Sequence record: PP355768.1
Direction: 5' to 3' (one strand)
DNA length: 64,000 bases
The position numbers and the translations under genes were made by a program. Shown in pieces: positions 28,738 to 35,011 of this stretch (positions within the stretch are counted from its first letter, which is position 1; each line of letters opens with the position of its first letter). Under the pieces are notes generated by a model. That model worked only from the letters and a program-made list of their open reading frames with translations. It was not told the origin of the DNA and made no database searches.

Positions 28738-29454
28738 TTATGATGCGATGGCTAACGATTGAATGAATTGTTGTGGCTTAATTCCGTAGTCGCTTCTTTC
28801 TTCTTCGGTCATACCTTCCCAGCAATGAGCTAAACGCTCGCAAAGATATTGATAATCATTATCATCATCCAGCGCTTCATCTATGAATGACTCACCCGCA
28901 AGGCGCACACCAATAGATAGAATATCGTTGATTGCGGTAGCGTCCATCGTTTGAAGGCCAGCAGCAGCAGCAGCAGCCAACACGCCTTTATTATCGTCAA
29001 TCATAGTGATAGTAGAGTTCGGATATTCAGCTTTAAGCATTTCGAAATAATGCGTTTTATAGATACCATCTTTTGCATAGTACACCTCTTTGTAATCAGC
29101 ATCGCCAATATATCGGTGCAATACATCGCGGGATAGTATCTGGATATTACCACCGCGCCCCGCCCTGATACGTTGTTTCCGTAGGAAATAGTAATCGCTT
29201 TTGCTCATATAACGAGCGGTAACAACGATGTTTAATACAGTGGGATCATTAAGCGATGCCCGCATATATTCAACCAGCGGTAAAAGAGTGTCGGTCATAA
29301 TTGCATCATGAACGCAAGCCTTTTCCCGGTACATGTTTAAATCTAAGTTACCTTTCTCATCCATACACGGGAACACACGGGCGAAGGAATTAATAACAGT
29401 CCCGTCTAAATCCCATAACTTAATTGCCTTAATTGCCAGTTTATTAAAAGCCAT
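28738..29454 (-). CDS. dmp: Deoxynucleoside-5'-monophosphatase (HAD family)
   Basis: WDLDGT motif I and MIDDN motif; first gene of the T5 terminal repeat. Confidence 0.9.
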   Translation of the reverse strand: MAFNKLAIKAIKLWDLDGTVINSFARVFPCMDEKGNLDLNMYREKACVHDAIMTDTLLPLVEYMRASLNDPTVLNIVVTARYMSKSDYYFLRKQRIRAGRGGNIQILSRDVLHRYIGDADYKEVYYAKDGIYKTHYFEMLKAEYPNSTITMIDDNKGVLAAAAAAGLQTMDATAINDILSIGVRLAGESFIDEALDDDNDYQYLCERLAHCWEGMTEEERSDYGIKPQQFIQSLAIAS

Positions 29455-30340: not shown

Positions 30341-32023
30341 TTATGCAAAGAAAACGCCGTCTTTAAAGTCAATCAAGGTACGTTGACCGTTTTCATAGGT
30401 GATCAAATGCGTTTGTGACCAGCTAGACGCGCCAATGTTATAGCCCATATCCAGCGAGCCAGCGACGCCAGCAGTATAAACGCCGCCGTAAATGCTGGGC
30501 GTGTGCGTGTGGCCAGTGTTCATCTTACCCAGCTTACGGAATCCTTTCGGGTTGCCACGAGCGCCGTTAATGCCGTTGTGACCGTGGGAACCGCATTCGA
30601 TGCCCGCGATTTTCATCGATTCGTCTGTAGTTAAGAAGATCGCAGCAAAATCGCAGCCAGCAACATTGCGCAGGGCGTAATCCAGCACGTTAAAAGTATC
30701 GTCTTTGTTTTCGATTGCCTCATAAATCGCAGCATTCAGGCGATAATAAAGATGAGCATTCGCCGGGTCTTGCTGAATGTTAGCCTTGCTATCATCCAGC
30801 CAGCGAGAAAGCGCAAGATCGTGGTTCGATTCAACGATCACCGTTTGGCTAAATTCACGTTCCATTTGCTCCAGCACGCGCCCCGTATCGATCAGGTCGT
30901 CAATTACCTTGTCACGTCCGGCGGCATATTGTTTCGCAAGGAAAACACCACTAGCGCGGTTGTGATGGTTGCGCGACGTGAAATCATGCACATCATGCAC
31001 AATCTGGTAACGAGGGCGCAGGATATCTACTAGCGCGGTTCCGCTAGGGTTATATTCCCAGCTTGCCGCCGCGACAGCGTGATCCAGCTTTTCGGCGTGA
31101 ATGTCACCATATTGCAGCGCGGCAACGTGGCCCGTTACTTCTTCGCCACCGTTAACAGTAAATTTATGATTAAGATCGTAAAACATCCCGCTTTCGTCCA
31201 TCGTTTCAAGCTGGCGAGCAAAGAAGTTGCCGTTGTCGTCGATCTCTACCAGCAAAGCGCCGTAATTATGCAGCGCTTCGGCTTTTTGGCCCGCTTTTTG
31301 CTGAATATAATTTTTCAGCGTCGCCGTGCCCGTTGAATACATACGGCGCACCGTGTCGCCCTTCATTGCCGGGACACTTTCGGCGGTGATTTTAGCGTGA
31401 CCAATAGCCAGCCCTTTCAGGCCGTAGGCGGTCGCAGTCTCGCCAAAGCCGGACAGCGGAAAATCAGCAGTCGGCAGAATGTTAATTTCTGCCATGAATG
31501 CAAAGCCTGTTTCACGGTTGCCCAAAAACACGTTTTCATCACAAATGAAATCTGAGAAAGCATCATCATATTTCAGATCATCATTGCCCTGCCCATTCTG
31601 GAAGCCCTTTTTATTGTAAGCATATTTGCTTACTAATAGAGTAGCACCGAGATATTTCGCGGCCTCCTGTAAGGTTTTCCAGAAATTAGCATGAGGGAAG
31701 GTATTATTCTGAATCGACGTTAACAGAAAACGCTTACCCGGAATTACCTTCCAGCTTTCGACGCTAGAATTAAGCTGACCAGCGGCAACGGGGCGGGAAT
31801 CTTCCACCGCAACACGTTGGGCGCGTTTTTCAGCAGCAGGTTTAACAGGCTTGTTATTATCCAGCCAATCGCAAATTTCGCTAGAGTGTTTCGCCGTGCC
31901 GTAATGCTCTTTGCTCAATTCGTCGCAGATCTCCAGCTTTTTAGCGCGCAGACGTTTACCCCAAAAATTGAGGTTATTTGCGGCGGTTAAAATAGCTTTT
32001 TGTTTCTCAATTGCAATGATCAT
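30341..32023 (-). CDS. A1: A1 protein (host DNA degradation and second-step transfer; metallophosphoesterase-fold nuclease)
   Basis: 560 aa; YGDIH, HD..D, SNHD, HGH and GHTH motifs; T5 A1-like N-terminus. Confidence 0.93.
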   Translation of the reverse strand: MIIAIEKQKAILTAANNLNFWGKRLRAKKLEICDELSKEHYGTAKHSSEICDWLDNNKPVKPAAEKRAQRVAVEDSRPVAAGQLNSSVESWKVIPGKRFLLTSIQNNTFPHANFWKTLQEAAKYLGATLLVSKYAYNKKGFQNGQGNDDLKYDDAFSDFICDENVFLGNRETGFAFMAEINILPTADFPLSGFGETATAYGLKGLAIGHAKITAESVPAMKGDTVRRMYSTGTATLKNYIQQKAGQKAEALHNYGALLVEIDDNGNFFARQLETMDESGMFYDLNHKFTVNGGEEVTGHVAALQYGDIHAEKLDHAVAAASWEYNPSGTALVDILRPRYQIVHDVHDFTSRNHHNRASGVFLAKQYAAGRDKVIDDLIDTGRVLEQMEREFSQTVIVESNHDLALSRWLDDSKANIQQDPANAHLYYRLNAAIYEAIENKDDTFNVLDYALRNVAGCDFAAIFLTTDESMKIAGIECGSHGHNGINGARGNPKGFRKLGKMNTGHTHTPSIYGGVYTAGVAGSLDMGYNIGASSWSQTHLITYENGQRTLIDFKDGVFFA

Positions 32024-32666: not shown

Positions 32667-33071
32667 TTATTCTGCCGACTCTTTTACTTCATCCTGAACG
32701 CCAACCATACGGGCGATAACGTCCAGTTGATCCAGCTTCATTTGTTCCAAACTTGCCAGGCCGTCGGCATCTTCGATCAGGCCGTCAGCAATGGCGTGCT
32801 GAGTGAGAACGCGCACATAGTGAGCCTTACGCAGGGAGGAACCGCCGCCGACTTTGCGCGGCTTATCGGACTTCTGATACACCTTTGCGCTAACCAGTTT
32901 AGAGCGCACTTTAACATGCGATTCAGCACCGACAGCCTTTGCAATATCGATAAGACCTTGCGAGTTAGCCACCTCCAGACCTTCGGCGGCAATAATGCCT
33001 TCATACATAGAAATCGCAGTTGCGGCGTTTGTTTCGTTCCATGCAAATTTTTCGGTTTTAGTAGCAGTCAT
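32667..33071 (-). CDS. A2: A2 protein (second-step DNA transfer, DNA-binding)
   Basis: 134 aa; VRSKLVSAKVYQKS..RKVGGGSS.RKAHYVR as in T5 A2. Confidence 0.92.
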   Translation of the reverse strand: MTATKTEKFAWNETNAATAISMYEGIIAAEGLEVANSQGLIDIAKAVGAESHVKVRSKLVSAKVYQKSDKPRKVGGGSSLRKAHYVRVLTQHAIADGLIEDADGLASLEQMKLDQLDVIARMVGVQDEVKESAE

Positions 33072-33365: not shown

Positions 33366-33626
33366 TTAAGCGACGGCTAACCATTTATCATCTTTGCGAA
33401 TAACCTTTACAACGTCGCCGGAATCGACCCGGACGCTATAAAGTTTTAAATCACTGTTTTTTGCTTTTTCCGTTTCGGCGTATACCGCGTTGATTTTATC
33501 AAACGGGATCATAGCCGCCCCTTTGATATATCCGATTTTTTCATTTTCGCCCGGCTTACTTACGTCGCCAGTAACAAAAGGAATAAAAACGGAATCACCG
33601 ATCATTGGGGTTTTAACGTTCTGCAT
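33366..33626 (-). CDS. Pre-early hypothetical protein
   Basis: 86 aa; GGAG RBS. Confidence 0.72.
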   Translation of the reverse strand: MQNVKTPMIGDSVFIPFVTGDVSKPGENEKIGYIKGAAMIPFDKINAVYAETEKAKNSDLKLYSVRVDSGDVVKVIRKDDKWLAVA

Positions 33627-33732
33627 GTTTCTTACTCCAGTTTAGTTTATTGGGTTATCCGGTTAACACTCTTTTACTGCTAGAGTGTTAACAGAAAACT
33701 CAATTACCCTTACTGAGAGAATCGACTTTTCC

Positions 33733-33797
33733 AAATTTTTAAAGAGCGGTGTTGCTTATTGAGATTCTATAATAAAGCGTTATCGGCAGATTGTCAA
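33733..33797 (-). promoter_or_regulatory. Pre-early promoter followed by a boxA-like site
   Basis: TTGACA (33797-33792)-17-TATTAT (33774-33769); CGCTCTTTAAAAATTT at 33748-33733. Confidence 0.75.
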
Positions 33798-33982
33798 ACG
33801 TTATTTTGTAAAGATTTTAGATAACGCATCATGTTATCCCAAATCATCGGCAAGCCTTGCTGACCTCCGCGCTGATAAGAGCGGTAACGCCGTTTTATAT
33901 CGCGCTGCATTTTGACCAATTCCGAGCCTGCCATTTTGTTCAATTTTGCTGCCGGTTTAGATGATATTACAAATCGTTTCAT
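33794..33982 (-). CDS. Small basic pre-early protein
   Basis: 62 aa Lys/Arg-rich; AAAGG RBS. Confidence 0.65.
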   Translation of the reverse strand: MKRFVISSKPAAKLNKMAGSELVKMQRDIKRRYRSYQRGGQQGLPMIWDNMMRYLKSLQNNV

Positions 33983-33997
33983 GTTGTCAACCTTTAA

Positions 33998-34123
33998 TTA
34001 GTGGAGTGTATGATTTCGTTTCTTTTCCATAAAGATGTTCCCATCTTTATGTTGGAAATAAACTTCTGTATCATACACCTCTAAATACTGCTTTATGAAT
34101 TCTTCAACTTCTTCAACGGTCAT
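33998..34123 (-). CDS. Small acidic ORF (41 aa); its natural start at 34158 appears frameshifted
   Basis: MTVEEVEEFIKQYLEVY...; the upstream ATG AAT T|AAA ATC AAT CGA would extend it in another frame. Confidence 0.4.
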   Translation of the reverse strand: MTVEEVEEFIKQYLEVYDTEVYFQHKDGNIFMEKKRNHTLH

Positions 34124-34212
34124 AGCAGCCGCTACATTTCGATTGATTTTAATTCATGTTTTCGGTTCCCTTATAAAGTAAAGAAAGCCGATAACGCTTT
34201 TTATAGAATCCC

Positions 34213-34228
34213 AAATTGTTAAAGAGCA
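34213..34228 (-). promoter_or_regulatory. rrn-type boxA antitermination element
   Basis: TGCTCTTTAACAATTT, identical to the E. coli rrn leader boxA. Confidence 0.75.
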
Positions 34229-34230
34229 GT

Positions 34231-34359
34231 GTAGGGCGGGGGCAGACTATACTTGTTTCGGCCTTTCCGTTCGGGGTAGTCGGGGCTATGTTACCGCCTC
34301 CTGATACCTGACTACTAGTGAAACGCTTTCGTGTTTCCCGTTTCGTCTTGCCGCCCTAC
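34231..34359 (-). ncRNA. Candidate structured 5' leader RNA (129 nt)
   Basis: GTAGGGCGG/CCGCCCTAC closing stem, internal GTAGTC/GACTAC stem and GAAA-capped hairpin; starts at the predicted TSS. Confidence 0.6.
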
Positions 34360-34366
34360 GAGATAA

Positions 34367-34394
34367 ATAATAACACAATGACGTTTAGCCGCAA
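34367..34394 (-). promoter_or_regulatory. Pre-early promoter driving the leader and A2-A1-dmp direction
   Basis: TTGCGG-16-TATTAT with an extended TG. Confidence 0.6.
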
Positions 34395-34590
34395 GCGGAG
34401 AATTGTAAAGAAGCGTAAAGAGAAAACAGGCCCACGATAGATAGGAAGCGCGCGCACGTGACACAATATTTAAAGAAAGTCAACGAATATTTTTACTATT
34501 TTTCTTCAAAAGGGGTTGACAAAAGCTATTTCACACGAGGTGAGGAGATCGCCTCATACCCGGTATGATTCATCGGCTTTTATCTAAAAC

Positions 34591-34911
34591 CGCTTAGAAT
34601 CGATTCTAGAGCGTTTTAGACCCTGTTAATAACTTATACAAAAAGCAAAAATGAAATTTAATTAGTTATCCACTAGACAAATGATTATTTTTATGAAAAC
34701 GCAAAATAATGCTTGCGTTTATTTTATGCTGTACTCCTGTTTTCCGGGCAAGTTATCCACAGCACAAAATAACTTGACAAGCTGAGAAGCGGTATAACGA
34801 GATATCCCCAGACTTATCCACAGGTTATCCTACTGTATATTTATACAGTATATTCCAGCAGCGGTAATACTCTAATATACCCCTAGAACGCTCTATAACG
34901 CATTCTGAGCG
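34591..34911. repeat. Non-coding block: inverted 29-bp motif pair flanking DnaA-box-like sites and a LexA box
   Basis: CGCTTAGAATCGATTCTAGAGCGTTTTAG (34591-34619) and an inverted copy (34883-34911); TTATCCACA at 34753-34761 and 34814-34822. Confidence 0.75.
34831..34850. promoter_or_regulatory. LexA (SOS) box
   Basis: TACTGTATATTTATACAGTA, 1 mismatch to the consensus TACTGTATATATATACAGTA. Confidence 0.75.
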
Positions 34912-34959
34912 CTTTAAATTTAGAAGCCATATTAAAGGCCATTGCTAGAGGGGCGCAGA

Positions 34960-34995
34960 AAAACAAAAAGCCCGCTCATTATAAGCAGGCTTATT
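34960..34995 (-). terminator. Terminator after the leftward pre-early operon
   Basis: Minus strand AAGCCTGCT..AGCGGGCTT followed by TTTGTTTTT. Confidence 0.65.
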
Positions 34996-35011
34996 ATTAG
35001 TTAGCTAACTA

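Follow-up and report, generated by a model that had tools for sequence, protein, structure and literature searches.

Organization of the pre-early region

The stretch of DNA analysed here, referred to as the window, comprises 64,000 nucleotides (nt) of sequence record PP355768.1 and matches Klebsiella phage vB_Kpn_AM_K6 (PP355768) at 100%. The region of interest comes from a T5-like phage of the family Demerecviridae, in which it is the first-step-transfer (pre-early) region; its genes are located on the minus strand (Table 1). The subject of this study is the leader of the operon that contains the genes A2, A1 and dmp. In this leader a promoter (P1) is followed by a segment of 129 nt, the ends of which can form a perfect helix of 9 base pairs (bp), and by a motif (boxA1) of the type to which NusB-S10 binds in the ribosomal RNA (rrn) operons of Escherichia coli.

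An original prediction, made from the letters of the window, had proposed that the operon mimics the layout of the rrn operons and thereby reads through several internal hairpins. The layout was borne out, in that the A2-A1-dmp operon has a leader with an rrn-type boxA that is conserved in the family and is placed as in rrn, but the hairpins were not: the scan for intrinsic terminators on the transcribed strand inside the operon yielded no convincing match. The operon extends over 5.6 kilobases (kb) from the predicted transcription start to the dmp stop codon, and its first 1.3 kb contain untranslated stretches of 236, 167 and 294 nt.

Table 1. Features of the pre-early region of the window, listed in the direction of transcription (ORF, open reading frame; aa, amino acids).
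Feature	Position	Strand	Description
Intrinsic terminator	34968..34992	-	strong; closes the upstream gene block
Promoter P1	34367..34394	-	-35 TTGCGG 34394-34389; 16-nt spacer; extended -10 TGtTATTAT 34375-34367
Structured leader, 129 nt	34231..34359	-	closing stem 34359-34351 with 34239-34231
boxA1	34213..34231	-	consensus match GCTCTTTAACA 34227-34217; 19-nt run shared with the E. coli rrnB leader 34231-34213
Arm X	34186..34215	-	5' arm of the long-range helix; begins 1 nt after boxA1
41-aa ORF	33998..34123	-	within the X/X' loop; 5' of it the three-codon ATG-AAT-TAA
Promoter-like site	33961..33990	-	TTGACA-18-TATCAT; 11/12 matches; overlaps the hdi start
hdi homologue, 62 aa	33794..33982	-	DUF7416; within the X/X' loop; 44% identity to the T5 67-aa ORF (BLASTP); Pfam match
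Promoter P2	33769..33797	-	TTGACA-17-TATTAT; 11/12 matches; homologue of T5 promoter T5P1 = P_D/E20
Arm X'	33758..33788	-	3' arm of the long-range helix; overlaps P2 spacer, -10 and start region; its end is 10 nt upstream of boxA2
boxA2	33732..33749	-	CGCTCTTTAAAAATTTGG; ~14 nt past the predicted P2 start; consensus match 33747-33737
DUF7177 ORF, 86 aa	33366..33626	-	
A2 gene	32667..33071	-	BLASTP 66% identity to T5 A2; relatives annotated A2
A1 gene	30341..32023	-	BLASTP 73% identity to T5 A1
dmp gene	28738..29454	-	BLASTP 61% identity to T5 dmp; counted as the final gene of the operon

The boxA motif and its conservation

The closing stem of the leader is followed by AC and then by TGCTCTTTAACAATTT (34228-34213). 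In a direct comparison, the longest run common to the window and the rrnB leader of E. coli MG1655 was CACTGCTCTTTAACAATTT, which comprises 19 nt and includes the ACU that follows the stem. The gamma-proteobacterial boxA consensus is GYTCTTTAANA (Baniulyte et al. 2017, PMC5725501). It occurs twice in the window, compared to 0.56 expected matches, and both copies are located in the region described here, on the transcribed strand and each after a promoter.

This arrangement is not restricted to the window. All 50 further Demerecviridae loci, which stem from phages of Escherichia, Salmonella, Klebsiella, Pantoea, Enterobacter and Pectobacterium, contain a promoter, a helix that starts at +1, a helix that ends 1-4 nt before boxA, and a boxA that matches the consensus, and relatives that infect Vibrio and Proteus retain the promoter-boxA part of the module. 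The motif GCTCTTTAA[A/C]AA was found about 850 nt upstream of A2 in 40/40 A2-anchored loci of IMG/VR, T5 (L009/L013) among them, and the boxA motif is likewise present in the GenBank records of several Klebsiella phages, Pantoea AAS21, Enterobacter KKP_3711 and Pectobacterium DU_PP_V. In loci of 8-14 kb from about 40 relatives the consensus is restricted to leader positions on the transcribed strand. Copies are located behind pre-early promoters in T5, Epseptimavirus-like, Sugarlandvirus, Pantoea, Enterobacter and Pectobacterium phages and also in Proteus phages and three groups of Vibrio phages, with a distance of 20-40 nt in the Vibrio phages D414, X1 and Hades. Proteus phage 2 contains it behind four forward promoters and one divergent promoter, always in the direction of transcription.

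Every phage copy fits the consensus, and the sole variable position is the N of the consensus. The identity with the E. coli rrn boxA noticed at the outset thus holds for the window but is not a conserved property, because position 10 varies between C, A and T even between near-identical Klebsiella phages.

The helix upstream of boxA1

The closing stem of the leader is formed by GTAGGGCGG and CCGCCCTAC, and further inside AGAC (34348-34345) can pair with GTCT (34247-34244); the leader also contains GTAGTC (34315-34310) and GACTAC (34281-34276). These elements, the promoter and boxA had all been proposed originally, and each was found in its place on the minus strand. Folding of the window leader alone gave a minimum free energy of -42.7 kcal/mol, which is not significant in comparison to shuffled sequences (z = -1.28). 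Since the energy is unexceptional, the structural evidence is the comparison with relatives.

In this comparison, nucleotides 1-4 are paired, the distance from the end of a stem to boxA is 1-4 nt and boxA itself remains free in 21 of the 22 unique leaders of 38-132 nt, compared to 0-4% of the shuffled sequences. The lengths differ between lineages: the leader comprises 38 nt in Enterobacter KKP_3711, 44-46 nt in the T5 types (45 nt in T5) and in GlastoCabaret, a close Klebsiella relative (45 nt), 58 nt in Pectobacterium DU_PP_V, 60 nt in Epseptimavirus-like phages, and 129-132 nt in some Klebsiella phages and Pantoea AAS21. Among eight long-form sequences with a mean identity of 93% the closing stem is invariant, compensatory changes are confined to three inner pairs, and the covariation term is just -0.14 kcal/mol. 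In Pantoea AAS21 the central hairpin of the long leader has been swapped for a different hairpin of 11 bp. Because the long-form data are thin in these respects, the 129-nt fold is treated as a lineage-specific elaboration of a short module, and its inner fold is not established in detail. Compensatory changes are also found in the closing stem of Pectobacterium phages (GUAGGA/UCCUGC versus GUAGGG/CCCUAC). The stem and the length of the structured leader that had been described were recovered, but the 129-nt fold is an expansion restricted to some Klebsiella phages and Pantoea AAS21. A search of Rfam gave no match in the whole window at gathering thresholds, and with E values up to 10 the stretch 33600-35000 yielded the upstream terminator and noise, and nothing over the leader.

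A stem of 12 bp that encloses boxA in T5-type leaders (AAGTTTACCGCC/GGCGGTAAACTT) was considered as well and is treated as lineage-specific, as it is not retained in L023/L024. It should also be noted that GAAA-rich loops (CGAAAC, GGAAAC, CGAAAG, CUGAAAGG) are located upstream of boxA in the leaders of the window, L036, L086, L087, L210 and T7, and that these loops, which occur in T5-like, Vibrio-phage and T7-like sequences, resemble the A-rich loop of the rrnB boxB hairpin.

Promoters P1 and P2

The extended -10 element of P1 consists of TG (34375-34374) and TATTAT (34372-34367) and is followed by seven nucleotides up to G34359, which is the predicted transcription start. The promoter is therefore as described originally, but the start, which had been placed at about 34361, was set at this G instead. 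P1 was not listed by a simple promoter scan because its -35 hexamer matches the consensus only in TTG. Thirteen representative relatives have kept the -35 element (TTGCnn), the -10 element (TATTAT or TAATAT) and the discriminator ttatctc, and the spacer of 16-17 nt is variable in sequence; the invariant -10 of the relatives is followed by ttatctc and GTAGGRCGGCAA. Conservation of the boxes together with a variable spacer is a pattern like that of a promoter.

P1 is also backed by unrelated phage contigs of about 150 kb, in which the same -10 element, the same discriminator and a start with GTAGGGCGGCAA directly precede ORFs, in one case together with the consensus -35 TTGACA. This P1-like module spans the -10 element, the discriminator and the first 14 transcribed nucleotides, and it looks like a shared promoter and 5'-end module. 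Copies (TATTAT ttatcNc GTAGGGCGGCAAT) were noticed at L077:841-865 and L081:5464-5488 and in Cronobacter phage PBES 02 and Klebsiella phage KaOmega, where ordinary ORFs follow without a boxA, and the transcript start in L077 can form a hairpin of 7 bp (GGCGGCA/UGCCGCC).

Promoter P2 is a homologue of T5P1, and T5P1 is matched by its position relative to hdi with the experimentally characterised P_D/E20 (bioRxiv 10.64898/2026.04.02.716235). RNA evidence was available for the T5 locus as assembled contigs from four public RNA libraries. The contig of run X11 starts at L013:3453, 8 nt after the -10 element of P2, with the sequencing adapter abutting, and the depth in this run is 489 after P2 compared to 74 upstream. 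This contig end supports a start at P2 in T5. The promoter-like site that overlaps the hdi start may be the counterpart of P_H22 of T5. It was also observed that RIP-Seq (RNA immunoprecipitation and sequencing) libraries of 2024-2025, among the runs X8-X13, include the T5 pre-early region; should their target be an RNA-binding or Nus-type protein, they could be of direct relevance to this leader.

A long-range helix between successive boxA motifs

A second boxA is present in the window and in other Klebsiella, Pantoea, Enterobacter, Pectobacterium, Epseptimavirus-like, Vibrio X1 and Proteus phages, and it is located after the 3' arm of a long-range helix, the 5' arm of which begins directly behind the first boxA. 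In the window the duplex of the two arms, X and X', has an energy of -41.3 kcal/mol, compared to a mean of -21.4 kcal/mol for shuffled sequences (z -6.6). The layout recurs in eight lineages with unrelated arm sequences, and X and X' covary across the lineages. Outside the window it was found in T5 and in Epseptimavirus-like, Pantoea and Enterobacter phages, in Pectobacterium, where it occurs twice in series, and in Vibrio X1 and Proteus phages. The duplexes have energies of -31 to -49 kcal/mol and comprise 14-35 pairs, and they are long enough for RNase III in most lineages. Arm X begins at +1 to +3 relative to boxA(n), and the distance from the end of X' to boxA(n+1) is 1-10 nt, but 57 nt in Vibrio X1; the last boxA in each series has no helix partner.

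The mismatches in 20 unique X/X' helices comprise 21 G.U on the sense RNA versus 4 A.C, and these numbers stem from related sequences and give no clean probability. Even so, the bias towards G.U suggests that it is the P1 transcript that pairs, and not DNA or antisense RNA. In T5 the arms X and X' are the inverted repeats A and A' (IRA/IRA') of the AY587007 annotation, and X' is located within the annotated promoter T5P1. An antisense promoter at arm X was considered and rejected, as on the opposite strand the -35-like hexamer of T5 is only 12 nt from the -10 element and a 1-nt deletion disrupts the -10 element of the window.

In several lineages the ribosome-binding site of the first small ORF is part of a hairpin located just behind arm X (about 34160-34186 in the window; L013:3177-3222 in T5). 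The 5' side of this hairpin overlaps the end of X, and thus the formation of X:X' might alter the translation of the first small ORF.

Surroundings of the leader

The gene name hdi has been taken from bioRxiv 10.64898/2026.04.02.716235. In relatives an ORF of 55 aa begins after the ribosome-binding site of the leader, and at this position the window has ATG-AAT-TAA (34148-34156), so that the first small gene of this phage seems to be truncated or reshaped. The terminator that closes the upstream gene block insulates P1 from upstream transcription. Between this terminator and the leader lies a non-coding stretch of 600 nt with two exact DnaA boxes (TTATCCACA) on the plus strand (34753-34761 and 34814-34822), 400-460 nt upstream of P1; the window contains three exact DnaA boxes, compared to 0.5 expected. 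The two boxes upstream of P1 are the counterparts of the DnaA-box pairs that have been described by Davison in the terminal repeats of T5-like phages. A non-coding block of 87 nt upstream of P1 (34591-34677, minus strand) has 92-94% identity to many T5-like phages of Salmonella and Escherichia, far above its flanks, and includes a hairpin (TCTAAAACGC...GCGGTTTTAGA).

The record PP355768.1 comprises 261 kb and has been filed under Straboviridae, yet the part in the window is a Demerecviridae (T5-like) first-step-transfer region. The sister record AM_K4 (PP355766.1, 288 kb) has the same mismatch between Straboviridae and Demerecviridae, and each of the two records looks like a joined assembly of two different phages.

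Proposed function of the leader and alternative explanations

The boxA leader is probably a cis-acting loading site for host Nus factors, which would operate independently of phage proteins and would render transcription of the A2-A1-dmp operon resistant to Rho and faster. The pre-early genes must be expressed before any phage protein exists, and loading that is independent of phage proteins therefore fits their requirements. Host sigma-70 RNA polymerase would initiate at P1, and the nascent RNA would fold into a helix from +1 onwards, the 5' end of which would probably be protected and the 3' strand of which would act in the manner of the rrn boxB hairpin. Stem-loops at the 5' terminus stabilize the 5' ends of E. 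coli mRNAs, and by analogy the helix at +1 probably stabilizes the 5' end of the pre-early transcript.

BoxA would be exposed 2-3 nt past this first helix, and NusB-S10 bound to it, together with NusA, NusG and SuhB, would convert the polymerase into a faster, termination-resistant complex of the rrn type. The converted complex would then cross the three untranslated stretches and reach the essential genes A2 and A1 and, subsequently, dmp. Rho is the likelier target, because the lengths of these stretches are sufficient for Rho loading. Transcripts from P2 would be loaded likewise at boxA2. X would pair with X' as the rrn leader pairs across the 16S rRNA; with boxA tethered to the polymerase this pairing would be favoured, and the resulting helix may be cleaved by RNase III.

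Several points weigh against this assignment. The -35 element of P1 is weak, and P1 is absent from the annotated or characterised T5 promoters (AY587007 annotation; bioRxiv 10.64898/2026.04.02.716235). The assembled T5 RNA contigs cross the P1 region unbroken and at flat depth, and they are therefore compatible both with a start there and with its absence. T5 and its closest relatives are devoid of boxA2 though they have retained X/X', and boxA is only partly unpaired in the longer folds (0.31-0.99), a result that is variable and not decisive. With regard to the host systems, Singh et al. have argued that on rRNA the Nus complex mainly has a role other than antitermination (PMC4807359), and the boxA of suhB represses expression instead of promoting it (PMC5725501).

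This last example leads to the alternative of Nus-dependent repression, in which the Nus complex on boxA would prevent the next small ORF, either the 41-aa ORF or hdi, from being translated and would thus promote Rho termination, which would limit the production of a toxic protein or would provide feedback on pre-early expression. A boxA in the 5' untranslated region (UTR) of an mRNA has this effect in E. coli and Salmonella (PMC5725501), hdi is difficult to clone (bioRxiv 10.64898/2026.04.02.716235), and the hairpin after X includes the ribosome-binding site in several lineages. However, termination would be costly because the essential genes A2 and A1 are located downstream in the same transcription unit, the distances from boxA1 and boxA2 to the start codon are about 59 nt and 110 nt, respectively, and thus outside the 50-nt window of suhB-type sites, and in Proteus and Vibrio phages boxA is also found behind promoters without a nearby ORF. 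Repression of this kind is unlikely.

Somewhat less likely still is a role as a decoy, in which boxA RNA from very strong pre-early promoters would titrate NusB, S10 and SuhB off the seven rrn operons and thereby aid host shut-off. The number of boxA copies behind strong promoters, which ranges from two to five, would be in accordance with such a role, as would the strength of P2, the equivalent of which in T5, P_D/E20, has been described as strong (bioRxiv 10.64898/2026.04.02.716235) and is followed by the steep increase in RNA depth in run X11. A decoy would need neither the fixed placement beside helices nor the fixed orientation relative to the operon; it is, moreover, compatible with Nus loading and does not exclude it.

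It is very unlikely that the conserved element acts at the level of DNA, with the inverted repeats IRA/IRA' and the A/T-rich boxA-like box serving as protein-binding or cruciform sites for injection arrest, packaging or replication. The region does lie within the 'Repeat Region 1' of the terminal repeat defined by Davison and has DnaA boxes 400 nt upstream, but the boxA copies are always direct, never inverted, and located on the transcribed strand after a promoter, the motif fits an RNA-binding consensus at all specified positions, and the bias towards G.U on the sense strand of X/X' would be unexpected for DNA pairing. Lastly, the second option of the original prediction, an independent 129-nt small RNA that is released and acts in trans, is highly improbable despite the compact domain with its 9-bp closing stem and several GAAA-type loops, because boxA is followed by a ribosome-binding site and an ORF and not by a terminator, the domain is replaced by 38-60 nt in most relatives including a close Klebsiella relative, Rfam has no match for it, and the T5 RNA-library contigs are continuous through the region.

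If the leader does load Nus factors, a more far-reaching version can be put forward tentatively, although we regard it as rather doubtful: the head of the operon might be a miniature rrn operon on an mRNA, in which boxA1 and arm X would be held at the polymerase until X' emerges 180-400 nt later, the helix would form during transcription, RNase III would excise the hdi segment, and boxA2, 1-10 nt behind X', would reload the complex for A2-A1-dmp. If true, this would be the first case in which a virulent phage uses RNA looping and processing of the rrnTAC type for mRNA, and it would possibly also drain Nus factors from host rrn operons.

Comparison with known systems

The put sites of phage HK022 consist of two stem-loops that act directly on the polymerase and are not known to involve Nus factors or a boxA. 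They share with the predicted function of the T5-like leader that a cis-acting leader RNA renders the host polymerase termination-resistant without a phage protein, but they have no resemblance to it in sequence or structure. The nutL and nutR sites of phage lambda are likewise leader RNAs of early phage operons with a boxA that recruits NusB-S10, as is predicted here. In lambda, however, boxA deviates from the consensus and precedes the boxB hairpin, which is bound by the phage protein N, whereas the boxA of the T5-like phages has the full host consensus, the hairpin is located upstream of it and arm X follows downstream, so that the lambda-type order of boxA and boxB hairpin was not found. 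The T5-like leader would need no phage protein, unlike lambda with its N, because the genes concerned are the first to be expressed. The 5' UTR of suhB and other non-rRNA sites (Baniulyte et al. 2017) have a boxA of the same consensus in an mRNA leader, but these sites are at most 50 nt away from the start codon and repress, whereas the phage copies are at a greater distance and stand at the front of an operon whose distal genes are essential.

The early leader of T7 is another case of a virulent phage with host polymerase, tandem strong promoters (A1-A3) and a subsequent RNase III site (R0.3). The sequence GCTCTTTAACAATCTGG is present at T7 813-829 (L217 464-480), 63 nt past the start of A3, with a GGUC/GACC hairpin before it and the R0.3 hairpin directly behind it. 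The differences are that a local hairpin instead of a long-range helix follows boxA, and that there is a single boxA. The boxA of T7 may already have been noted in older literature, but the RefSeq records of T7 and T3 do not annotate the motif. A scan of IMG/VR for the boxA motif with a TYTGG tail yielded at least 118 stretches; among the matches listed, many are T7-like or prophage-like contigs with a hairpin before boxA, and in many of the T7-like contigs listed the motif is about 800 nt from the contig end. Short prophage-like enterobacterial contigs (L103, L106, L112, L117, L124, L128-L131 and about 30 more) have a hairpin (AAGCGCCC...GGACGCTT) that is directly followed by GCTCTTTAACAATCTGG, and judged by this unit they are another phage lineage with an rrn-style hairpin-boxA arrangement. 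The recurrence of this motif in T7-like phages and in numerous further phage contigs suggests a common early-gene strategy of phages of enteric bacteria, which would be to borrow the antitermination signal of host rRNA.

A literature search found no report that links boxA with T5, T5-like phages or the early promoters of T7, with older subscription literature and Davison 2015 (PMC4743489) lying outside the search. BoxA, promoters and Nus are all unmentioned in the analysis of the T5-like terminal repeat by Davison 2020, and the supplement of Klimuk 2020 contains no promoter coordinates. T5 has served for seventy years as a model phage, and the literature found states no mechanism for the full and quick transcription of the first 8% of its DNA by unmodified host polymerase. 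The family-wide presence of boxA behind pre-early promoters turns this into a hypothesis on Nus dependence and Rho protection that is genetically testable. It also offers a plausible role at the level of RNA for the inverted repeats IRA/IRA' of T5, which had been catalogued without a function, and for phage engineering and for the use of T5-like phages in therapy the module is predicted to be a compact expression leader driven by host factors.

The closest likeness is to rrnB of E. coli. In rrn, boxA-bound NusB/E is tethered to the polymerase via SuhB and helps the long-range helix to fold and to be processed by RNase III, and the Nus complex about doubles the elongation rate and confers Rho resistance in reporter contexts (PMC4807359; bioRxiv 10.64898/2026.03.17.712431). 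In addition to the 19-nt run that the window shares with the rrnB leader, the copy in a Pantoea phage, GCTCTTTAAAAATCTGG, is the boxA of the rrnB 16S-23S spacer. The geometry of stem, ACU and boxA in rrnB is the same as in the window, and the hairpin ends 2-3 nt upstream of boxA in both. The processing helix of the 16S rRNA (-57.9 kcal/mol with the spacer) has its 5' arm 0 nt after boxA, as arm X follows at +1 to +3 in the phages. A second hairpin-boxA unit is located in the 16S-23S spacer, as the second boxA of those phages that have one is located past the 3' arm, and tandem strong promoters are found upstream in both. The differences are that the phage helix encloses 180-400 nt with small protein-coding ORFs and not the 16S rRNA, that its 3' arm overlaps an internal promoter, that the downstream genes are expressed as mRNAs, that T5 has only one boxA, and that no boxC (UGUGUGGG-like) is present after boxA, its place being taken by UUUGG, UUGGG or UCUGG and then arm X. 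Thus, boxA is an element of an already known kind and is not unique to the Demerecviridae, but the layout in T5-like phages is unusually complete in its resemblance to rrn.

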